From: Klebsormidium nitens
Lineage: Eukaryota; Plantae; Klebsormidiophyceae
Direction of reading: 5' to 3'
DNA: 64,000 nucleotides
NCBI GenBank assembly: GCA_000708835.1
Contig: DF236992.1
Location: 204,513-268,512, forward strand
Under the pieces are notes generated by a model. That model was not told where the DNA came from and made no database searches. It was given only the letters and a program-made list of their open reading frames with translations. The position numbers and the translations under genes were made by a program. How positions within the stretch are numbered: position 1 is the first letter of the stretch; every line of letters begins with the position of its first letter. This document shows, one piece after another, positions 315 to 64,000 of this stretch.

Positions 315-3300
315 GCGGCGCTCATTCCAACGATTCCGTCTTCGAGAAGTCCCTATACAGCAAGGATGAGTCAGGTAAGGAGGAAGTTGTGTCTATTCAA
401 TTGTATGTACTGTAGCATGTATAGAATTTGATCGTGCTAAGACAGGTTTGAAATCCATTTAGCATCTACTGTGCTAATCTCGAATTTCCACCTAGGCTGT
501 TAGGTGTTTCCAGATTGCTTCAATGTATCCATGCTAAGTCCTGCGGCAAGCGTTGAAAATTCTGATGCCCCTAGCACTTTCTCTGCCTCGACAGTAATTC
601 GTTTTTCATCTGCAACGCTTTCTGAAATCCTCTGTAACGCTTTTGCTTTTTGTATTTTGTTGGTCTACTTCGTTCAGATTTTCTTCCATCGATTGGAAAC
701 AGTTTCCAGATGTTAACACTGGTTCTTTTCCAGTCCTTGCAGCCCCGAGGACTGCTGCCGACAGCTATTCCTCTGGATCCAGCTCCGCCTACAACAAAAC
801 CGCAGACACTGCTTCTGACCTGAGCTATCAGGCCCGCGACACGGCGGCTGCCACTTACGATCGTTCTGCTCAAGCCGCCTCCGACTCCTACCAGAAGGCT
901 GCTGACACCGCCTCTGATGTCAGCGCGCGCGCCGGCGAGACTGCATCCACTGCCTACAACAAGACTGCCCAGGCCGCTTCGGACACTGGGGCGTACGCTT
1001 CGGACACCACCAAGTCTGCGTACAACAAAACCGCCCAGGCTGCGTCCGAAACCGGGGCGTACGCTTCGGACACCACCAAGTCTGCATACGACAAAACCGC
1101 CCAGGCTGCGTCCGACACCGGGGCGTACGCTCAAGACACCGCCAGAACGGCTTACGACAAGACCGCCCAGGCTGCGTCCGAAACCGGGGCGTATGCTTCC
1201 GACACCGCCAAGTCTGCTTACGACAAGACCGCCCAGGCTGCTTCCGACACCGCCGCCTACACGTCAGACACCGCCAAGTCTGCTTACGACAAAACCGCCC
1301 AGACTGCGTCGGACACCGGGGCGTACGCTCAGGACACCGCCAAGTCTGCTTACGACAAGACCGCCCAGGTTGCTTCGGACACTGGGGCGTACGCGTCAGA
1401 CACCGCCAGGTCTGCTTACGACAAGAGCGCCCAGGTCGCTTCCGACACTGGGGCGTATGCTCAGGACACTGCCATGTCTGCTTATGACAAGACCGCCCAG
1501 GTCGCTTCCGACACGGCTGCTTACACCTCGGACGTTGCCAAGTCTGCTTACGACAAGACCGCCCAGGTCGCTTCGGACGCTGGGGCTTACACTGCCGACA
1601 CGGCGCGGGCCGCTTACGACAAGACCGCCCAGGCTGCTTCCGACGCCGCTGCCTACGCCTCCGACACTTCCCGGGCAACTTACGACCGGGCGGCGGAGAC
1701 GGCGGAGCCGTACAAGCAGAGCGCGGTGGATTCGCTGAACCAGACCAAGGAGACGGCCATTGACAAGACGGAGCAGACCACCGGGGCGTCCGACCTGCGG
1801 AGCGAGCAGAAGCCTCTGACGACCAAGGCGTACGAAGTCGTGACTGGGGCGGCGGGCGCGGTTGCCGGCGCTGCTGCAGCCACTGCGGAAGCCGCCGGGA
1901 ACGCTGCCTCGTCTGTTGCTGCGCGCGCCCAGCCTCATGTGGAGGCGGCGAAGGAGTCGGCGATTGACACGACGGAGCAGACCACCGGAGCCTCGGACCT
2001 GAGGAGCGAGAACAAGCCGCTGACGTCCAAGGTCGTGGAGGTGGCTTCGGGCGCCGCAGGGGCGACCGCTGGTGCGGTGGCAGCGGCAGCAGCGGCGGCG
2101 AAGCAGGCCCTGTTCGGCAAAGGTGAGACTGCCGTGCATTCGTCAGTTCCTACGGATCGTGTCTCATGGTACTCTTGTGCTCGCGAAGATGGTTGAGCTG
2201 TGCGAAAGCTGCAAGTCCTCTCGTTCTTTCGTGTTGCCTTCAAAGGTTATAGCGACGATCGGATAACAGATTGGGAGTTCTGCGTACATCAAATCATTAA
2301 ATATTTCAACGTCTTCAGTTTTTTGCTATCAGATTGCTGTTGTCTTGGACGTGCTCAGAGCTTCCCGACTTCGTCGTTTTTCCCCTCTCCTGCGCTTTGC
2401 TCGTCCGCTTTCTGGCTGCTTGTGAAGTCCTCGTTTCTATTTCATCTATCCGAGCACTCCGCTTGTTGCAATTCTATTCTGACGTGAAATATGCTCCTCT
2501 TCCCTGCACAGGCGCCACCCAGCTGGACGACAAGACCATCGCCGAGTCTAAGTACGTGATCGGCGGGGAGGGCCTGACCACCCCAGAGGGCAAGACCACC
2601 TCTGCTTACGCCTCTGACGCAAACCCCGCCGCAGTTGCTGCCGGAAACGCCGCCCGCCAGGCTGTCCTCAGCCCTGCCGCCACAGCCGCCGGCCAGGCTG
2701 CTCGCGACGCTGTCCTTGGTGGGTCGCAAAGCACGGGCACGGGCATCCACAGCGCGGGAGCAACACGTGATTCCAACATGGCAACCGCCATGATGGTCAA
2801 CACGTCCAACACGAGTGAGGGCCTCGATCATGCTGGGTCTCTTGAAAGTAATCGATCTTCGTTGGGACTTTGCACAAGTTTGGAAGTTTGCAGTCGGTTG
2901 CTATCTGAGCTTGATATCTTGCTGACTCTTGGGGTACGGAGAAGTATGAGTCTCCAAGAATTCTATGTTGTGAACTTTATGGCCACATCCCGAACTCCCG
3001 GACTTTGTAGGGATGGAGAAGAATCTTTCCTAAGATCCTCTTTTGTACTTTTTATGGCCACGTCTCGATATTGGCATGTGAGAATCGACTTGTCAACAAT
3101 TTACAGGTCTTTGCTCTGCTTCCTCAAGCCGAAGAAGAGTATCAGCAACTTTTTTGTGGCATTCGTTCTTCTTCGACATTGTTTGGTTTGCGAGGCTGCC
3201 TGCTCACAAATCGCTCCCCCAACTGCAGCCCCCGAGTCCGGCAGCCTGCTCTCGTCCGGGACCGCCCCCCTCTCCTCCGGCACCGGTGCCACCCCCATCA

Positions 3301-5270
3301 GCACCGGCTCTGACTTCAGCGACACGTCAGCAACCTCCGGCGACGCGCGCACCATCTACCAGAAAGCGGTGGACGCTGCGACTGGCGCCAAGGAGGCGTT
3401 CTTCGGGCACCCGGTTGGGACGCCCCAGGCGGTCGTGGCCCAGCAGGAGGAGGCCGCGGGAAGTGTGCCGCCCCCGAGCCCCAGGACGCTCGCTCAGAAG
3501 GTGGCGGACGCTGCGACCGGGGCCAAGGAGGCTTTCATGCACGGCATCGTGAGTGTCGCGATGATAAGTTATTTTTTTTGTTGGATACGTGATGGATAAA
3601 TGTGCGTCCTTTTTTTGTCTGAATGGTAGTGATTTGCACTTACTTCGTCGACCCAGGGATTCCCTACCCCGAGGAAGCTGTAGGGATGGAAAGAAGAATG
3701 TTTCGATGAGTAAAAAGGCTCCGCCATCTACAGCGTCGTATTACGTCCTCGTCCCCAAACTTTTGTCGGAGCTCAACGAGCCTACGTACAGAACCCAACG
3801 GCGAAATTTTTGATTTGTTTGCTTTGAATCTTCACCTTTTCCTAGACCTTTAGATAGACTTTTGAAGGCTCGGCCTCGGTTGAGGGGCCAGGGAGGAACA
3901 TATGCTGATTCCGACAAGTTGGCAATCCCATTCAGTCTCGACATCTAATCATCTCTTCCCCTGTGCAGGTCATGACACCCGAGGAGAAGAAGGCGGCGGA
4001 GGCCAAGGAGCTGCTGGTTGCCCGCATGCAGGATGCTTCGCTGGTGGATAAGCCGGTCACTCAGGTTGCCGGCGAGGCAGCCGTGACGACCAAGGAGTCC
4101 GTCTTCGGTCCCCCGGAGGCGGCTGCCAGGCACGGGTTCGAGAAGCCTCTAGCGACGCAGGCCCAGGAGGCTGTGATCCAGGCCAAGGATGCGGCGGTGC
4201 CGTACGTTCAGGCTGGTACGGCCCCGAACTTGATGCTGGTTTTCGCAGACTTGGTAATTTTTTTGGTCTGTACTGCTGACCTACTGGGATCGTAGTGGGA
4301 CGTAGGAGAATGAACATGCAGAAATGCGGAAAGGTTTTGACCGTACTTGTCACGTTGTCTTTAGCCAGCCGCATCAATTCGGTGAGGATCGATGAAACCG
4401 AATCCCGCCTTTGCGTGACGGTGCCAGTCTGAAAATTATCGCTTTGCTATTGAAAAATCTGTAATAATGTTTCGTGGATGGTTCGGGCTCTTGACGATCG
4501 AGGAGACCTCTTTCATATTTGGTGCTGTAATGTTCGGGACTCTAATCTCCCCATGAAGCTCAGTCGACGAGCCTTCCCTTATCGTCGGCAGACACATCGA
4601 TTAGCACCTAAGTTTGTTCCCCACCCTGCCTCCTTGAAAGTACTTTCGTTCTGCAAGGCATGTGCGTTTTCGATTTGGCCCCATGGCTGTGTTCCTAATC
4701 GCTTCTGCCCAAGTACTGCCCGGCTCGTTGTCTCAACCAGACCTTCGACACAGTTTCTAAGCACGTACCTCCTCTCCGCCTTCAGGTGTTCAAAATGCGA
4801 CCCCGTACGTCCAGGCCGCAGCCGACAAGACCGCCGAGCTGGCCGCCCAGGCCCGCGACACCGCGGCCCCCTATGCCGCCCAGGCACGTGACACCGTCGC
4901 CCAGTCCGCGGTCGCCGCCAAGGACGCTGTGGTGGGCGCTGCGATTACTGCCAAGGACACCGCCGCAAATTACGCCGGCCAGGCCAGTGACGCCACCTCC
5001 GCTTACGCTACTTCAGCGAAGAACGCAGCCGCGGATTACACCGGAGCCGCCCAGCAGAAGGCGAGCGATTACACGACTAGCGCCAGGGACACGATGCAGG
5101 GGAGCGGCACGGGTTCGGCGTCCCAAGGATATGACAATGATGCGGCACTCAGGGCCGTGAGCGGGGGGTCTGCGCTGTCCGGGCAGGGGGAGCACAAGGG
5201 CGGGATCGCGGCGGTCATTCACACTGGCGGGAAGGGTGAGTGGGTTGCGGGAACGCCCCCTGCCGAGTAA
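315..5270 (+). CDS. Large LEA (group 3/LEA_4-like) protein, >930 aa, 5' end probably outside the window. Exons 315-374, 734(or 743)-2122, 2512-2814, 3229-3548, 3969-4215, 4786-5270
   Basis: GT-AG junctions join in phase throughout. The protein is Ala/Thr/Asp/Lys/Gln-rich with 11-mer periodicity (TAQAASDTGAY/ASDTAKSAYDK). The 3' end is uncertain because a possible donor (G|GTGAGT) lies at 5236. Confidence 0.8.
952..1680 (+). repeat. Coding tandem repeat, 66-bp (22-aa = 2 x 11-aa) unit, about 11 copies
   Basis: Repeated gcttacgacaagaccgcccagg...gacacc motif encoding AYDKTAQxASDTxAY. Confidence 0.9.
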
Positions 5271-6780: not shown

Positions 6781-9700
6781 TTATTGCGGAATATGCACTG
6801 CGGATTTTAATTGTAGATTGGAGACCCTGACTGCGCCCAGTAGTTCCTCAGGAAGCTCGCTTGCAGTGTTACCCTGCGTGAGGAATGAAAAGATCTCTGC
6901 TAAGATAGGTGTGACCATTTCAATTGAAAACGGCCTTGTCTCGACCCACCTCGAAGTCTTTTGTGCATCCATTGCTTTGAAACACAAGAGCGGCCTCCCT
7001 CTATTACCTAACACAATGTTCTCACCGCAAGGGCATAGGGACACTCTCTGAGAGAGGGAATGATACCACATGTATCCACTTCCTCCGTTCAACATTGGCG
7101 CCTAACCCTTATTCTTCTCTTTTTTCTGAAGCCGCATCCGGCTTTCAGAAAGTGGAAGCTGAAAAAGTGTGTATCTGAAGTGCTAAAATCCGAGCATTTG
7201 CGAACTTCTTCGTGGGCTCTGGACCCGATTTGGGCCCAATAACAGCGTCAAAAAAGAGCGCTTCAGACTGAGATACGTACCTGCACCAGGTAGGCCATGT
7301 CAACGGTGAGGTAGGGGAAATAGCCCATGGCCAGCCCCAGGATTCCGTTGGCCACCACGGACGACCCAATGTCGACGTCGATCTGAAGGAGACGGAACCA
7401 CAGAAGTTTTAGGCCCTTACCCATGGATGGTTCTGAGCAGCTTATGGGCTGGTTAGAAAGTGTTTTATATGTTCGATAACCAGACTTCAGCGGTGAGTGG
7501 CCTTGGAACAAGGTCAAAGCCCGGTTCCTCGTCCAACAACCTAAGACGCAATATTAGTTATCAGCCTGGTTAGCAGCCAAGATCTTCAAGTGAAAAGGCG
7601 GCGCGCAATCAGCTAAGCACAAATCAAAACAGATGGTTGAACAACTAGACCACGCACTGCGCTCTATCCGACTGTATTCTCATCGTTTCCTCAAGAAGGG
7701 AGCCAAATGAAGCGTCTCAATCGTCCAAGGACCCAAAACAGCAAGAGGGTTCTTCGTATGACCCTGGCAGATCTTTTCCCTCAACCACTCTCCAATTTCA
7801 GAGGAGTAAATAATCATCACTCAACAGGACCGTTGTCCAATAGTGTAGAACGGCCCATCAACAGCCCGACTCGACAGAGCAGCCGGTGGCACATGTGACG
7901 AATGGGTGTCAGCCTCGGAGCCTGCCCCCAAGCGGGCCATGTTTCCTTTCTGTTGCCACGTCAGACGATCTTATCCCCTCAGCCACTGAACGGACAAGCG
8001 CGCGGAGAGGGTCTCACCTCCAGGTAATTGGCCCCCTGGAAGTATGTACATTCGAGGGCCTTGCCGAGCAGGCACGGGGTGGAGCCGACGGACTGCTTCA
8101 CGATCCAGCTCCCCTGTGACAAGGCCCCGGACACGTGTCAGTCTGAGAGCAGCAACCGGAGGTTGCATGCAGTTTGTTGTGATTAGCTTCGTTCCGCTCA
8201 AAGCAAGGCCTTTACTGTGACCGAAGGCTCAAAGCAAGGTCTTTACTATGACCGAAGGCTCTACTTGTGTTGCACTCGAACACAGGGTATCATTTTTCGG
8301 GCCCCAGGTCAAAGCCAGAGGAGTTGAAGGAGATTGAGCTTGGCTTTCCAAAATCCTCTGACTTTCGGTCCTTTGCTATCATGTCAGGGCCGCCCCAGCT
8401 TGAGGGATTCAGGGAACTTGCGGCAAAGCCACGCTTCGCACAAGGCCCACCTTGGGAATGGAGGGGATGAGCTTGAGGCGGCTGTTGCGGAAGCTGTCGT
8501 CTCCGTGCACGAACCGATAGAGCAGGCTGCCCGGCGCGAGCGGCCGCTCGTGCGCAAAGTAAAACACCATGCTGTAGTGGGTCACACCGGGGACCTGCAC
8601 GGGACGTTGACTCGGTTCATGTCTAAGAACTTTTGATCGACTGTAAGAACTTCAATAGCCTTGCAAGTAGGGAAAAAGGTATGGTTCAGTACAAGCCTGC
8701 CACAATGCTTTGCCTTGAGGATTGGTGTGCCAAGCCAGGAGAGTGCAGAAGTCATCTCATCTTCGGGAATGGTTCCTAACGTCTTCATCGTAGGCAGAAT
8801 CCCAAAACTCTGCCGGTACTGAAAACGGGTTGACTACCGACGAGAGAAGCTTCCTTTTTCTCCGAACCTTCAGCAGTTTCTTCCATACAAAGCTGCAGCA
8901 ATCAGGCCGCCGCGAGCTTTGAAAGTCAAACATCAAAGTCGGTGTCTTGACATAAAGCTGCTGGCATCTGACGACGTTTTCGAGCACATGAGACCGACTT
9001 TCAACGAACCTGCATGTTGACCACAAACAGAAAGACGTCGCCCCCCGCCCGCGCCGCGTGCTCAACGACCCCTCCCTCGCGTAGGGCAACGTGGTCGATG
9101 CGCTTGTTGGAACGGTACCAGTCCGTTGCAACGAGCCGGCACAAAGGGTCCCCAGCACGAATCTGCGAGGTTTGAGGGGTATGTTAAATTCTTGGCCCCC
9201 CGGCAGATTAGACGCGATTTGAAAGATCTGCCAAAGACAAATGCGGATGTTTAAGGTTGAATGTTGAATCACGAGAGGGGTTTCAAGACGGCTAACGATC
9301 GAAGTGTGGACAGGCAGAGTCAATAGCAAGTGATCCCGCTGTTGAACAACCGTTCAGACATGCGGGTGCAACACGAGTATCAACCTTTTGAGCAAGCATT
9401 GTGATCTCCTCCAGATCGCTCATGCTCATAGGTCAGTGGAAGGCTCACCTTTCGCCGATCCATGGTAAATGTCTTCCCGCGCACTTTGAACGGCCGCCCC
9501 CCGGGCTCGGACCAGCTGTCCTTGCCCTTGAGGAGGTCCCCCCGCCGGTGCGTACCCAGGTCTTCCAACTCCTGGAAGATGCTCGCGCTTGACGGCAGCT
9601 CTTCCGTTTCGAGCGGGATCTCCGCAATGGGGGATTCTGCAGAGCCGGGGGGGTTTTCAGTGAGGTTCGGGCGTTCGGGCGTCCGGACTTTAGTTTAGGG

Positions 9701-56200: not shown

Positions 56201-57972
56201 GTCCGCTAGGGCGTCCACCTGCAAGCAACATGGACGTTTAGATCGGTCGGTCGTCGTTGGGTGATGAATACTGGAGGGAAAAAGAGAGGGGGACGGGTGG
56301 GGCAGAAAAGAAGTTAGTGGGGGAGCCGAAGCCGAAAGCTTGGTCCTGATCCTATGCCTTTCGGAAGCACGTGAATGCTGGCGCCCTGAAGAGGAACAAT
56401 TCAGCATGAGCCAAGCGAGTGCTTCTCGTTGGACACGCAGACACTTGCATGGAGTCTGAGATTATTGTGGCCCGAGTGCTATTGATTACTTTCAGTACAT
56501 GCATTGACTGTTGCGGATTTGAGTCGAAGTGAGCCGCGTCAAAATCCTCTTGTTAACGATTGAACGGACCACTGCTCTTATCACGAAGCTTAAAAACAAC
56601 TGAAGCGACCAAAGGAATGCGAGCACTGCAAACGGGCACCTCAATTCTTCACAGTGAATGCGGCTCACCTCTTTGCCCCCCTCCACTGCGGCATGCCAGC
56701 TGTCTGTGACTGGCCGGACCCCCTCGTCGGCTGCCTCCGCAACAATAGGGTAGGGGTTGCTGGCCCCTACTTCCCCAGAGAACAGTTTGCGCAGCACCAG
56801 ACGGAGGTGTCTGCAAAAGAAGCAGAGGAGATGAAGAAAAGCAGGGGGCAAAGAAGGTGGGCAAGGGAAAAGAGGAAACTGAGCCTACAAAGAACTGGAT
56901 AGAAGGTGAACGCAAGCATTTGCGTAAGGCTTACATGTCTCGCAACTGATAACGTGCAATCTTCTTGGCGCTGCTCGTTCAGGATACTAATGGGAGCTAC
57001 CGTTTAGGGAAGGCATAGTAGGAGGCACGAAAAAGCAGATGCGAAGGCCGCCGCCCTTACTTTCCGTCGTCCGCTTGCTTCAATTGCATGGCTTCTGAGT
57101 TCAGGACGGACTTGAGAGATGTGTCGACAGCGGCGGAGGAGCCAGGCACGGTCTCCAAAATCGCCGTTGCATACACAGGGTTGGCAACGGAGACCCACAG
57201 GTGCTGCAAAAGGCAAAGACACTTTGCTGTTTCTCGTCTGATCCCACTTTCCTTTCTGGAGTAGAGCCTTTGAACCTTAAAATGCCCTTGTGTCAAGAGG
57301 CACCTGGAAAGGAAGTAATTTGACCTCAGCCGAAGCAGATTATTGCAGCCATTGGGCTTAATCTTCTGATAGACTTAGTGAAGAGGAACCCAAACACAGC
57401 CAATACCAGCATGATTTTTAACAACAGTCAGAATATGTGAACATGCTACCGTCACCTCCAACTTCTGGTGTAAGTCCTGGTGTATATGCAGGTACCAGTC
57501 TGCATGATAGGATGAGGGCCTCACAACTCACCACCCACAGGTAAGCTCCGTTATTACCTCTGACACTATGAAGTGGAGGTCTATACTTTGAAACAGAAAG
57601 GCAGTGCCTGCTGATTGCTGGTGGTGCAAGCAAAGGGCAAGAGCATACCTTTCCTATCCAGAACCTTGCAAGGAGTCCGTACTCATGGTGGAGCGCCGAC
57701 AAGAAGGGTGTCGGGTCACCCACACTACCACCCCCAGCCATAAAGGCCTTCTTGTGACTCTTCCGCCCCCATCTACCCCTCGAGTCTGGCCCTGGGATGC
57801 GTTCCCCCAGCTTGTGATTCTCAATCCTATTCAAAATGGTGCCGACGATGGTGGGTAGGATGACAAGCAGCAAGAGGAGGGTTGCAGAGATAGTCAGCGC
57901 CTGGGGAAGCTCGGTTGAGTAGAAGTAGTCGACTACGTCCGAGAAGCGGAAGGGTTCGTCCAAAGGCTCCAT
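53245..57972 (-). CDS. Cytochrome P450 with non-canonical I-helix (possibly CYP727-clan-like); middle exons only partly resolved
   Basis: N-terminal TM anchor followed by IPGP, K-helix ETLR, FVPERF and heme motif FGQGLRACPG. The I-helix reads VFGGLAPVASLL. Confidence 0.88.
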
Positions 57973-59370
57973 GCTGATGTGGTGCACCTGGAGCAAGAGC
58001 AATAGGTCATTTGCAAAGGCGTAGCCAGCATGTTTGTTGAGGGTGTCATAAAGATACGTAGAAGGGCTTTGATACTGCTTTTCAAGAGTGCTTGGCATGA
58101 CAAGTAACAGAAACTGCAGTATGCTACCAACTGCCTCACAGGGCCTTGCGGTAAATCTCCAAAGGGCCCACTGCGATCACACTCATGTACTTTGATTTGG
58201 ACCGACGTAATGTTGTTCTGCATAATACATGTCACATTCTGAATTCAAGTTTTGTTGCAGGCCGTATATATTAGTACACGGCAGCATTGCAGCAATTCGT
58301 GTTTGCCAGTCTGACACTGATACACGACGTTCTTGCTTCATTGCGTCTTTGATCTTGGTTACCACCGCAGGTGTTTTTGGCGGCCCGCTTGTTGTTGAAA
58401 ATGGTGAGACTTACCTTCAACTATAAGATCAAGGAATGGTCTCCAAAACCGCTGCTCATTGCATCTGTGATGATGACTCAAGCCGCACTTGATCGTTGAC
58501 TCTTCAGCATCAATGAATTGGTCTCCTTGCAGCCAGATGGTGCCAACCCCTTTATTCCCCAGCCACCTTTCTGTTCCTAGCTAGCCACGGCGGTCTCAGC
58601 TGCGCCATGTTCTGCACAAAAGTGGTAGAATCGCATGATGCATCATCTCGACTCGTATTACGAGTCGTATAAAGGCCTGATACATGGATGCAAAGCCGGC
58701 AATGCAGCCAAATTGAAATGCAGAAGCGGGGCAGAAGCGTGCTCTTCTCTAATTTGGCAAGACGGTTGTCATCGAAATTTAGGGCTGGATCTTGCGGTCA
58801 TCTTCATGGTTCAGAATAATGTTCATCGGACGACGCAGATAAGCTTCATGAAGCCCCTACTACAGATCGACGACTTAAAGTAGCGTAATACGTGTTCTCA
58901 GATCTCGCGACAGGGAATGTCTTATCTGATGACCGAATCACATGGTGGAAGACAACGCAGCGTGCACGCCGTAATATCTGCCCTGTCGCCGCGAAACGAA
59001 GATCACGCCGAGAGGAAGCAATCATTTTGGCGCCAAAAGCTTGTCCTGTAACGCACAGTCGATCTAAAATCAGAAGCTTCGAGAACGTTACAGCCGGAGA
59101 GTAAACCGAAGCACCCACGAGCCGCCAGGAGCGGCGACCACGATTGAATCAGCTCTGGATCTGATGTCAGACGATCATTCATGAGGCATTCCCTTGCCGG
59201 TCCCGGCATGGCTTCCTTCCAACGTTGATACGCAAGCACTGGCAGTGGCATGGCAAGACGGTTGAGTGGACCTTACACCAGCTGGAGGTCTGGGATGCGG
59301 TTCTGCATGCTCTGAAGACCGCCTTCAGCAGGTTGTTAGATAGCAAGACACACATGGGCTTACGTGAAGT

Positions 59371-62300
59371 ATGCCGCAATTGCGGAGCAGCGGACGCCAA
59401 CTTCGTGCTGCAGCTGCAAAGGCTTTGGCCAGAGGCTTCGCCGAGCCCAAAGTAAATTCTGGTGACAAGAAGCCACCTCAAGCCCCGCCTAAGAGACAGA
59501 AGCAGGGAGCGCCAATCCAGGAAGACCAACAGGAGAAGAGGGACGGTTGCAAGGACAAGAACGAGTTGCATTGCGGTCCTGCTGCTGTTGTGCAGCTTGG
59601 CTTGCCTGAGACTCTAGATAGTGAAAGTCCAGCCGCAGGAGAAAATCAGGAGTCAGCTGGAAACCAAGATCTGCTTGAAAGATCTCATAGCTCGCAAAGT
59701 TCTTCGAGAGAGTCGTCCTCTGAGGCAGGAAGGGAAGCCAGTGGAAGCGAAGAGAGGGAAGAAATGGAAGAGGAGAGCGAGAAGAAGAGTGGGGACAAGG
59801 CTGCAGCAGGAGAGGAAGAAGGAAACACTGCGCCTCTACCAGAGAGGGTATGTGGCATCCTTGCTTCTCAGTGTGGCATCCTTGCTTCTCAGATTGTCCA
59901 ACCTTTGGAGGCAGCAGGATGTAGCATTAGGCACTGTTTCAATGATAGGTTGCTGTCAACTTGGTTCTTCTCTATATACGGCTCCTAACTGGGCTTGTAC
60001 TTTGGGTGGAAGCTGTCGTGCCACAGTTAATAGGTTCTTGTTGTTGTTGGCTGCAACCTAATCTACATTCTGGATGCAGGTGCAAGTGGGTGGCTCTCCT
60101 GTCTACAAAATTGACAGGAAGCTTGGTAAAGGTGGCTTTGGACAGGTCTATGTTGGGCGGAGAATAAGCGGAGGAACAGAGCGGATAGGTCCTCAGGCAG
60201 TAGAGGTGGGACCCTTTTCGAAAGAGCTCGTATCTTTTGAGAGCTAATTTGTGGAGGAGAGTGTCATTTTGGTGCGCGTTCATGACTATCTGCTTCAGAG
60301 GTTCTGGAAGACGTTGCATCCAAATTTCTCTGTGCAGCAGAGCACTTGCCTCGAGGAGCGCCTCTCGGTGGTCCCCCTGACTTTCAGGGAGGTCGTTTCT
60401 TGCAGGTTGCTCTCAAATTTGAGCACAGGTCGAGTAAGGGGTGCAATTATGGGCCACCCTATGAGTGGCAGGTGTATGAGTGAGTCAGCTTACGCTGGTT
60501 ATTGGTAACAGTTGCATAGCGCGCTGCATGTTGGCTTGTCTCTGTGACGGGTGCATCATCATAATTGGTATGGCTCATGTGGGCATGCTTTTACATTTCT
60601 TCATGTGGTCATAAGCCGCTTGAGTGCAGGGTTCCGGCTGCTGTATTTTGGACCTTTTCTAAATTGTCTCTACGGACTTCGTGCAGTACTCTTGGAGGGA
60701 GCCATGGGGTTCCAAGGGTGCACTACAAAGGTCGGCAGGGAGATTTCTACGTCATGGTCATGGACATGCTTGGCCCAAGTCTCTGGGACTACTGGAACTC
60801 TGCAGGGCAAGCGTAAGTTTCTCTGCCTGCAAGCAATTTCATTTATCTTACGAGTACTTATTTTGCTGCGGCCAATTGCAGACTGTTTTAAGTGACGCCT
60901 CCGCTTCAGCTCAAGCTAGACTGCTGTCAGGCTACTTCTCTGGCAGCTTTTGCAGCTGTTGACCGGCCTTTCTTTGCTCCTTTGGTCAATCGCTTTTAAC
61001 CTCGTGGCCTGCGCGGAGTTCCAAGCAGCAGCATTCCATCTTGACCCCAATGGAACCGAAGAGCATCGGAACCCAGCAGTGCTATTACAGAAAGTGCCAC
61101 AGCATCCACTATTCAGTGGTGGTTTTGCCGAGCGGAATCGTCTAATTGTCTCTTTTCTGGTCGCAGAATGTCGACGGAGATGGTTGCGTGCATAGCCATA
61201 GAAGCCCTTTCCATCTTGGAGAAGCTCCATTGCAGAGGGTACGTGCCGCTCTTTTTCACGTTTGCCTTTGCGCTGGATTTGGTTCGCTGTCAATGCCTGA
61301 TCTGCGTCGAGCATGTGTTCTACTTCAAGTAGAAGACATCGTGCAAAAAAGCAATCATACAGTGCCCTAAATTTGGTAGGAACAAGATTCAAGGATGGGG
61401 TTGGTGACATGCTGCACGAGCTGGTGTCTTCTGCTTCAGCCAATCAGAGTTGCTCTTGACTGCATTTTCGAATAATATGTTGATTAGGCCCAGGAACTCT
61501 CTTGGCTGGATCTGTGACACCAGGGCTAGTAGTATCCACCAAGGCGCCTGCGCTTTTATCGTCCCCTGCACTGTTGCTCTCGACAGCTGCTGATGTCAAG
61601 CCCTTTCAGAGCTGGCATTGGGCTGTGTTGCATGATGCCATCAGCTGATTTGTGCCTAGTTTTGAGCTGCACGTACTCCTTGCAGGTACGTGCATGGTGA
61701 CGTGAAGCCTGAGAATTTTCTCATGGGCACGCCTGGCACAGTGGATGAGAAGAAGCTGTTCCTGGTAGATCTGGGGTTGGGTAAGTTGGATGTAGGATTT
61801 AATTTCTTTATTCATCATTCGTGGCTTGTCAACAATGTAGAGGCTTTCAAGCCTAGCTGAAACTCCAGTTCTGCGCTTGCAACTCAATTTTGCTGTATTC
61901 TTAAGAGATGTGGCTGATGGGTATGAACATGTTCGCTTCATCCCTTTTCTGGTTGCAGATTGATGCAGGGCATGATTGTCTTGATTGGTGATATGCGATT
62001 CGTGATGTTTGATTTTTCTGAGGTTGTGGCCAACGTTGGAAGCGTGGGTAATCTTGCAGGCTGGAAGGCTAGTTTTCTGTTGCTCTGACTTCATCCGACG
62101 TCTCGTGCGTGCAGCAACCAGGTGGCAAGACGAGTACACGGGGGAGCATGTCCAGTATGATCAGAGGCCCGATGTGTTCAGGTACTGCGCCCCGCCACCT
62201 GCCCTGTTGACAACTCTCCCATCTTTTGGCTTGCAGCAACCAAGTGGAGAGACAGCATTGGCGGGGGTCATGTCGACTATGACCAGCGGCCCGATGTGTT

Positions 62301-63718
62301 CAGGTGACTCCTCGAGTCTCCGTGGGGTCCGCATTCGTGCGGCCTGCTGTCGTATGTGTGCTGTGTGCTGCAGGCGCGATTCATTGTGCATGTATGAGTG
62401 TTGACGCTGACAGCTAAGCTTGACTCTGCAGGGGGACCGTGCGGTACGCCAGCGTGCACGCGCATCTGGGGAGGACGGGGAGCCGGCGTGACGACCTCGA
62501 GTCGCTGGCCTACACTCTGGTATTTCTGTTGCGGGGCAGGCTGCCGTGGCAGGGCTACCAGGTAGGCCGACTGGAGCAGAGCCCGTTGGCGTATTCAAAA
62601 GTACTGGAGCGAGTTTTGTTGAATCGTTTGCTGGGCATGACCATGTTGTGCAGGAAAAGCACCGAGGGCTGCCCCAGCTTATGCATCTGCGAGTTTTTCT
62701 GGATTTGTGTTCGGCACGTTTGTTTTAACATCCTGATTTTGCAGGGGCTTGTAACGGTGACTTGACAAGGTTGCAAAGAGACGTTCGGTTTCAGCGATTG
62801 AATCACCTTGGTCTTTGTTGAGCACCCTCTTCTGTTGCTAAGCGCACAGGTTACCAGCTTCTCAGAGCAGGCAGTCGAGCTGTTCCCTTTCTTGCAGACA
62901 CACCCAAGTGAGTTCCTAATGTGTTGCTCACGTTATCCTGTACCTCCTCCAGGGCGACAACAAGGGCTTCCTGGTCTGCAAGAAGAAGATGGCCACCTCC
63001 CCCGAAATGCTCTGCTGCTTCTGCCCCGCCCCCTTCAAGACCTTCCTCGAGTACGTGGTCAACATGAAGTTCGATGAAGAGCCCAACTATGCTAAGATGA
63101 TTGCCTTGTTCGACCACCTGTGCGGCGCCAACATGGCGCTCCGGCCCATCAACACGGACGGGGCCGCCCGCGTCATCTCGCAAAAGGTGCGTCGGTTCTT
63201 GCAGCTACTGTGTTTTGTGCTTCATGAGTTCTGCACAAAGCTCCTGCTGTGGCTTGCGTTCGGGTAGTTCTGCTACTATGCGCAAAGCATGTCCATTGTT
63301 TTAAGTGAGCTGGGTTTCTCTTACCATAATTAGATGCCTGTCCGGATTTTTAGATTCGTTTGATGTTTGTCCAGCATAACTGAAACAGCATCCGGTATAC
63401 TCAGCTTGAATATCAGCTTGTAAGGGCATATACGATAGCAGCCCTTCAGCCATGACCGATGCACCATCTTCTGGAGTCTCTAACAGCAGGGATCGGCTGT
63501 ACAAAGATAAGCCCCTAGCACAAAGTGTGGCGCACTTTACTATGACTAAATGCTGGCTTTGAATGCATCTTTTCTTTCTCTTAGGTCGGACAGAAGCGGG
63601 CCCGGCTGGCGGTGGAAGAGGAGGAGGACGACGACCAGCCCAAGAAGAAGATCCGGCTAGGCATGCCCGCCACCCAGTGGATCACGTGTTACAACGCCAG
63701 GCGACCAATGAAGCAAAG
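59371..63718 (+). CDS. MLK: MUT9-like/PPK/AEL casein kinase 1-family kinase, continuing beyond the window. Exons 59371-59847, 60080-60205, 60406-60479, 60687-60812, 61167-61238, 61686-61780, [62115-62181 or 62237-62303], 62432-62561, 62953-63186, 63585-63718
   Basis: Motifs [92 protein letters not shown], and [25 protein letters not shown]. Confidence 0.95.
61407..61609 (+). repeat. Dispersed ~203-bp repeat, copy 2 (kinase intron 5)
   Basis: Reverse complement of 26268-26471. Confidence 0.9.
62115..62181 (+). other. Alternative activation-loop exon 7A (67 nt): (A)[21 protein letters not shown](R)
   Basis: tgcag acceptor and GTACTG donor, open in the phase required by the flanking exons. Confidence 0.85.
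62237..62303 (+). other. Alternative activation-loop exon 7B (67 nt): (A)[21 protein letters not shown](R)
   Basis: ttgcag acceptor and GTGACT donor, same length and phases as 7A. Confidence 0.85.
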
Positions 63719-64000
63719 GTGCGTCCACAAGTGCTTCGCTTAGTAATGTCTGTGCCTAGTCAGCAGATGCTTCTGCTTATGCGAAGAGTCTCACAGTCGG
63801 CATTATTCAGTGCTGTCCTTTGGGCTCAGTGGAGTTGGTTGTTGCTTTACAAACTGGGTTGCTTTTTTGGGCTCAGCTTCTCTTACTGCATAGTTGCTTA
63901 TGTCACTGCCGAATGACCTGGACTGTTGGTTCAGCGGATAAGCACTTGCACCAGAAGGGGTCAGTTTTTCAACTTGTGCGTTGCAATCGCCTGTGGCAAC

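Follow-up and report, generated by a model that had tools for sequence, protein, structure and literature searches.

Two tandem exons encode alternative activation loops of a MUT9-like/HD16-type kinase in Klebsormidium nitens and are very probably spliced in a mutually exclusive manner

In animals, kinase domains can be altered by mutually exclusive exons, as in the MAP kinases JNK1/2 (exons 6a/6b) and p38alpha (CSBP1/CSBP2), and exons 2 and 3 of alpha-tropomyosin represent the steric-hindrance type of mutually exclusive splicing. In the green lineage, intron retention dominates and well-documented mutually exclusive exons are few. Land-plant members of the MUT9-like kinase family act on histone H3, cryptochrome 2, PIF3 and flowering-time regulators. 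Here we describe two tandem exons, 7a and 7b, in a MUT9-like/HD16-type kinase gene of the alga Klebsormidium nitens. The gene lies in a stretch of 64,000 nucleotides (nt) of contig DF236992.1 (204,513-268,512 of the forward strand), hereafter the window, and all coordinates are positions within it unless another locus is named. The pair is a rare, well-supported either/or exon switch in a plant lineage, of a kind (tandem mutually exclusive exons) that is already known.

Exon 7a (62115..62181) and exon 7b (62237..62303), both alternative, on the plus strand and supported by RNA joints, are 67 nt long and identical at 49 of the 67 positions. Each is entered in phase 1, left in phase 2 and free of stop codons. 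The acceptors read gtgcag before 7a and cttgcag before 7b, and the donors gtactg after 7a and gtgact after 7b; the unit of this direct repeat measures 122 nt from start to start, including 8 nt of acceptor flank. As read from the sequence, the intron between the twins (62182..62236, plus strand) is 55 nt long, begins with GTACTG and contains a candidate branch site, TTGAC (62207-62211), the A of which is the 29th base of the intron. Each exon encodes a 23-residue peptide between DLGL of exon 6 and GTVRYAS of exon 8, both of which are constitutive. Exon 6 (61686..61780, plus strand; RNA joints and translation) extends from the HGD catalytic loop to DLGL, the equivalent of DFG; exon 8 (62432..62561, plus strand; exon 8 contigs in four RNA runs) extends from GTVRYAS to WQGYQ, and its acceptor is common to 7a and 7b. 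Either exon alone keeps the frame (DLGL/A..FR/GTVRYAS). As 67 cannot be divided evenly by 3, inclusion of both or neither shifts the frame, and translation then meets a stop inside 7b (7a plus 7b) or in exon 9 (both skipped). A third, decayed copy of the exon was not found in the flanking introns, where local alignments were no better than those of shuffled sequences.

An initial annotation, made from the letters of the window, had claimed two homologous 67-nt exons at these positions with these phases, AG/GT sites and open frames, all of which hold upon rereading of the sequence and a script check. It had also stated that both or neither exon would disrupt the frame, which agrees with the stops computed in 7b and exon 9, and that the twins are separated by a 55-nt intron in which the A of TTGAC lies about 29 nt from the donor, which was confirmed on the sequence. 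Translation and alignment with CK1delta place the exons in the activation segment between DLG and GTVRYAS, as it had proposed, and the properties it gave for the peptides, an N-terminal half differing in charge (QDEYTGE versus RDSIGGG) and a common YDQRPDVF core with a synonymous AGG/CGG difference, were found again.

Employing Logan contigs of four public RNA runs from four studies (X1, X3, X5 and X9) aligned on 59300-64000, we compared the splice joints around the two exons. The depths given are k-mer depths of contigs and thus approximate, rare forms are dropped by the assembly, and the sample conditions are coded. All nine constitutive introns were seen as GT..AG joints in four of four runs, and every RNA contig was identical to the window, with zero differing letters. 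The initial annotation had proposed either/or use of the tandem exons and had listed the joints at which it would be visible; of these, 61780>62115 (exon 6 to 7a) was present at depths of 652 in X1, 349 in X5 and 251 in X9 and was not seen in X3, 61780>62237 (exon 6 to 7b) was present at 112 in X3 and 427 in X5 and was not seen in X1 or X9, and 62181>62432 (7a to exon 8) was present at 531 in X1 and 380 in X9 and was not listed as a joint in X3 and X5. The exon 8 contigs of X1 and X9 start 65 nt back in 7a, and those of X3 and X5 start at the 16 nt in which the two exon ends agree. X3 and X5 also have contigs that reach 62181 and others that reach 62303, each going on into the first 14 nt of exon 8; together with the start of the exon 8 contigs at the shared 16 nt, this is the break expected of a k=31 assembly graph at a two-isoform bubble. 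Joints 62181>62237 (7a to 7b) and 61780>62432 (exon 6 to exon 8) were not seen in the contigs of the four runs, which drop rare forms.

The major form was 7a in X1 and X9 and 7b in X3, and X5 contained both at similar depth (349 and 427). In X3, 7a was found only in a contig retaining intron 6 (61751-62182) and already joined to exon 8, at a depth of 12 versus 112 for the joint of exon 6 with 7b; this contig hints that the step under regulation is the joining of the exon 6 donor to the 7a acceptor. Clearly, both spliced forms exist, and their ratio differs strongly between samples. Contig assembly (bubble popping) or differences between culture strains, rather than regulation, could in principle generate such ratios, since Logan contigs drop minor variants and there are only four runs, from four studies with conditions hidden. 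We consider this explanation improbable: 7b outweighs 7a in X3 (112 versus 12), X1 and X9 show the reverse at 250-650 and X5 has 349/427, and popping would not invert the major form; moreover, contigs 100% identical to the window indicate the same genotype.

Three relatives of the window gene extend through the region of the twin exons. Locus L001 is a 68-kb contig of a JGI metagenome reached via a fragment match (P0082); L082, from the same metagenome, was reached by a search with the N-terminal exon, as was L083, which ends before exon 7; L096 comes from a Logan run and was reached by cluster look-up. Exons 7a and 7b are located at 5117-5183 and 5240-5306 in L001, at 8527-8593 and 8650-8716 in L082, and at 3055-3121 and 3178-3244 in L096, with 56 nt between them in each case. 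All three keep the orthologous gene, both exons, the AG/GT sites and the donors gtactg and gtgact unchanged. L001 and L082 are separated by a synonymous divergence (dS) of about 0.1, and L096 shares 91-96% identity with L001, so that the three represent one sister lineage. The same layout in three independently assembled relatives and the presence of 100% of the sampled 31-mers of 62100-62320 in DNA runs of the organism establish that the twin-exon arrangement is neither a product of chance nor the assembly artefact that the initial annotation had named as one circumstance that would undo it. Apart from these, about 18 DNA runs under other organism labels or from rock, sediment, freshwater and plant metagenomes contain 20-68% of the sampled 31-mers of 62100-62320; several further close relatives that carry at least a portion of the twin-exon region are therefore to be expected in public data.

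Between the window and the relatives, dS of the kinase region is about 0.70 and the nonsynonymous divergence (dN) about 0.009, and the flanking introns are unalignable. Against L001 and L082, dN is 0 for both exons, with dS of 0.40-0.54 for 7a and 0.24 for 7b. Exon 7a differs from that of the window at 5 (L001), 4 (L082) and 7 (L096) nucleotides, with an identical peptide in L001 and L082 and a single E>D change in L096; exon 7b differs at 3 nucleotides in each relative, all synonymous, and its peptide is identical in three of three. As judged from these substitutions, both exons are under purifying selection. Across species 7a clusters with 7a and 7b with 7b; therefore, the duplication predates the split and no gene conversion has occurred since. 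Nucleotide divergence from L001 is 6.0% in 7a plus 7b versus 11.2% in the constitutive exons 2-10 (Fisher p = 0.07), a trend, not significant, by which an extra constraint on the synonymous sites of the twins is possible. The inter-twin intron is 55 nt long in the window and 56 nt in the three relatives, and its first 11 nt (62182-62192) are identical across species. The remaining introns of the kinase gene range from 128 to 447 nt, with differences of up to 190 nt from one species to another; in the four sequences the next shortest is 128-154 nt, more than twice the length of the inter-twin intron.

These results leave little room for the view that only one exon yields a functional protein, the other being a decaying duplicate included by splicing noise. 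We regard it as extremely unlikely, because each form predominates in one run or more, both exons show a dN of 0 where dS is about 0.7 and introns can no longer be aligned, and the AG/GT sites and exact lengths are kept. The initial annotation had held that its proposal would fall if one exon never appeared in transcripts and was absent or degenerate in relatives; instead, both exons appear in spliced RNA and both are kept under selection, in line with either/or use.

A member of the family aligned with CK1 structures places the alternative exon at residues 153-174 of CK1delta, the activation loop directly between DFG and GT.RYAS. The twins differ at seven residues, which lie at CK1delta positions 155-166, and share the C-terminal half, YDQRPDVFR. 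The 7a loop is two charges more acidic and contains a Tyr-Thr pair (EYTGE motif), and the 7b loop has Ile-Gly-Gly-Gly, a glycine-rich stretch that is presumably more flexible. In CK1delta, the relative use of two substrate-site classes is set by the activation loop and its anion site 2 (R127, K154, K171; PMC7012598). It is only the position of the loop in the CK1 fold that suggests a functional difference; by this analogy the two loops may alter kinase regulation or substrate preference.

The exon pair would have arisen by tandem duplication of the 122-nt unit (exon plus acceptor flank) in the common ancestor of the alga and the sister lineage. The choice between 7a and 7b would be made at the exon 6 donor (61780): this donor would be joined to one of them, the selected exon would be joined to exon 8, and the mRNA would encode one of two kinases with seven differences among the 23 residues, located in the N-terminal half of the activation segment. 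Exclusion may be enforced in two layers. In the first, the intron of 55/56 nt, with a branch site some 29-34 nt from the donor, would probably be too short for efficient splicing; steric exclusion is plausible because the length of this intron has been held at 55/56 nt and is less than half that of the next shortest. In the second, the early-stop products with both or neither exon would be removed by nonsense-mediated decay. The exon choice itself would probably be regulated at weak splice sites. The 7a donor GTACTG and the 7b donor GTGACT (62304-62309) have no G at +5 and are conserved without change in L001, L082 and L096; a +5 G is present in the donors of exons 3-6 and 8-10, including GTAAGT of exon 6.

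Folding of 62150-62192 with RNAalifold paired the interior of 7a (..GTCCAGTATGA..) with its own donor (TCAG/GTACTGC). The potential for this hairpin was found in three of three sequences folded, which amount to one deep comparison, and the relatives gain one more pair through a synonymous C>G. Two other mechanisms were considered and rejected. Docking/selector pairing might involve an inverted repeat at 62361-62379 that pairs with both acceptors, but L001 and L082 lack the repeat in the aligned intron, and the fold of the whole region was no better than those of shuffles (z 0.77). As for an incompatibility of U2 and U12 splice sites, the donors GTAAGT, GTACTG and GTGACT are not U12-like (RTATCCTT).

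It is conceivable that the exons are alternative but the short intron is irrelevant and spliceable, and that exclusivity is brought about only by the frame rule together with nonsense-mediated decay. We take this as a serious possibility, though less likely than not. The indivisibility of 67 by 3, with the resulting stops in 7b and exon 9, speaks for it, as do the splicing of introns of 50-60 nt in many eukaryotes and the lack of conservation of the candidate branch motif between species. However, the length of 55/56 nt is kept in four sequences whereas every other intron of the gene varies, the inter-twin intron is less than half as long as the next shortest in any of them (128-154 nt), and no contig joins 7a to 7b even in X5, in which both forms are deep (contigs drop rare forms).

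Considering the RNA contigs, the conservation of both exons and the dimensions of the intron together, we hold it very probable that 7a and 7b are genuine mutually exclusive exons generated by tandem duplication, with two-layer enforcement by the short intron and nonsense-mediated decay, and with isoforms that may alter the regulation or substrates of the kinase; the enforcement and the function are the parts that we infer. Several points weigh against this interpretation. The RNA evidence consists of assembled contigs, so that the absence of products joining 7a to 7b rests on data that lose rare forms, and the junction of 7b with exon 8 is supported by 14 exactly matching letters where a contig ends. 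With coded sample conditions, the data amount to large differences between studies, not to condition-linked regulation. The three relatives form one lineage, and conservation is effectively a single deep comparison. The TTGAC branch motif is not conserved, the relatives having CTTAAC 5 nt further on (A at position 34), and the short-intron argument compares intron lengths within the kinase gene. Finally, none of the residues that vary falls within the 168-175 'switch' of CK1delta, and the difference between the isoforms is read from the sequence and predicted for the protein and biochemical level.

The taxonomic breadth of the duplication was assessed in land-plant-type loci and in the window and sister lineages; Chara, Chlorokybus, Mesostigma, Zygnematophyceae and chlorophytes lie outside this sampling. 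Among 80 metagenome loci found with exon 9, 72 contain the loop exon, each as a single copy of the same 23-codon extent. Matches to open reading frame (ORF) fragments added 12 loci, and all 10 of these that span the loop region have a single copy. The resulting 82 single-loop-exon loci were judged to be moss- and angiosperm-type by sequence. The exon 9 scan was dominated by land-plant DNA and contained no close relative; a search with the loop region of a Cucurbita HD16 protein returned only angiosperms among the best 120 matches, and in a representative protein search with cluster look-up the full-length matches were angiosperm outliers, with no named streptophyte alga among them. Within this sampling, only the window lineage and its sister lineage have the duplication. 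Both the 7a and the 7b peptides are about 70-80% identical to land-plant loops, so that neither twin is clearly ancestral. Loops of moss type and angiosperm type (taxa inferred from sequence) differ by only about three residues, whereas 7a and 7b differ by seven, which suggests divergence after the duplication followed by fixation. In a GC-rich relative, L084:480-1150 (JGI metagenome 3300050203, GC content 60%), there is a single loop exon of 72 nt instead of 67, with one-base shortfalls in the G runs of exon 8; either a long-read assembly has introduced indel errors here or this copy of the gene is decaying.

The part of the kinase gene in the window spans 59371..63718 on the plus strand, and the gene runs on past the window end. 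Besides the exons described above, it comprises exon 1 (59371-59847, with the ATG at 59371) and, based on RNA joints and translation, exon 2 (60080-60205), exon 3 (60406-60479), exon 4 (60687-60812), exon 5 (61167-61238), exon 9 (62953-63186) and exon 10 (63585-63718), all on the same strand; exon 10 begins the C-terminal DUF7477 domain. The open spliced translation of the window exons is 511 amino acids (aa) long and is 79-82% identical over about 380 aa to angiosperm proteins named casein kinase 1-like HD16 in a protein search. These HD16-named relatives we take to be the family of rice Hd16/EL1, Arabidopsis MLK/PPK/AEL and Chlamydomonas MUT9. In a Pfam search, exon 10 matched the N-terminal end of PF24289 (DUF7477) with 57.3 bits (cut-off 27), and single kinase exons were each too short to score; further DUF7477 ORFs lie downstream in the orthologous loci L001 and L082. 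A homologous family member, P0013, matched CK1 structures with E values of 1e-54 to 1e-58. By these similarities, the gene belongs to the plant-specific, CK1-related HD16/EL1/MLK/PPK kinase family, and the MUT9-like/PPK assignment of the initial annotation is borne out by the identity of about 80% to HD16 proteins and by the DUF7477 match. The HGDVKPEN and DLG catalytic motifs are intact in the translation; activity on H3T3, CRY2, PIF3 and similar substrates of the family is a prediction for the algal protein.

Two annotated angiosperm proteins from the search with the Cucurbita loop region stand out, P0151 (Artemisia annua, 760 aa) and P0152 (Gossypium australe, 1108 aa). With this 146-aa region they scored 471-566 bits, or 1.4 to 1.7 times what the query scores against itself (P0006, 331 bits); such scores suggest two kinase regions per model, by tandem gene fusion or mis-merged annotation. 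Just upstream of the kinase gene, the minus strand at 57040-58420 suggests another gene, and the intergenic or promoter region between the two would lie at about 58500-59300.

Searches of the literature retrieved no description of the twin-exon event or of either/or exons in the MUT9-like/HD16 kinase family, which fits the claim, made in the initial annotation, that no such case had been described for it. A comparative study reports that, unusually, short introns go together with exon skipping in Klebsormidium (PMC6142364), and the twin-exon architecture fits this report. The locus provides a green-lineage case with spliced RNA for both forms, large shifts between samples and deep conservation, and the part that is swapped is a kinase activation segment. 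With two naturally occurring loops on a CK1-type kinase that is the same in all other respects, the effect of the loop on substrate preference becomes directly testable, and the case bears on how early streptophytes diversified signalling proteins ahead of gene-family expansion. A more far-reaching proposal, which we put forward only tentatively and think rather unlikely to hold, is that 7a/7b constitute a switch under environmental or clock control, by which substrate choice or auto-regulation is adjusted in what is possibly the sole MUT9-like kinase of the alga, splicing replacing the four paralogues of land plants, and that they are one case of a genome-wide, animal-like and undescribed tandem-exon programme in Klebsormidium.

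Compared to the animal MAP kinases, the locus is similar in that tandem exons of equal length are used in an either/or manner and swap a short stretch of the catalytic domain, and the MAP kinase isoforms are reported to differ in substrate or partner preference. However, the MAP kinases are CMGC kinases of animals with the swap in a C-lobe segment, whereas here the activation segment of a CK1-like kinase is exchanged in a streptophyte alga, with an independent origin. With alpha-tropomyosin it has in common a very short distance from donor to candidate branch site (here about 29-34 nt, in an intron of 55/56 nt) that could block the joining of the twins; unlike in alpha-tropomyosin, the steric block is here a deduction, and the 67-nt frame rule adds a second safeguard. 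The swapped exon corresponds to the 153-174 activation loop of CK1delta, whose conformation and Site-2 anion binding shift substrate selectivity (PMC7012598). In CK1delta, however, this is a conformational switch within one protein, whereas the alga encodes two sequences, and K154 and K171 of CK1delta are T and P in the MUT9-like/HD16 family. The closest relatives are the plant kinases MLK/PPK1-4/AEL and rice Hd16/EL1, which share about 80% identity in the kinase, the motif HV[ED]YDQRPD[VM]FRGTVRYAS, the boundaries of the 23-codon loop exon and the C-terminal DUF7477, but 82 of 82 land-plant-type loci spanning the loop have a single loop exon. Apparently, land plants diversify the HD16 family by gene duplication (many HD16-like genes per species in the search) and not by twin exons.

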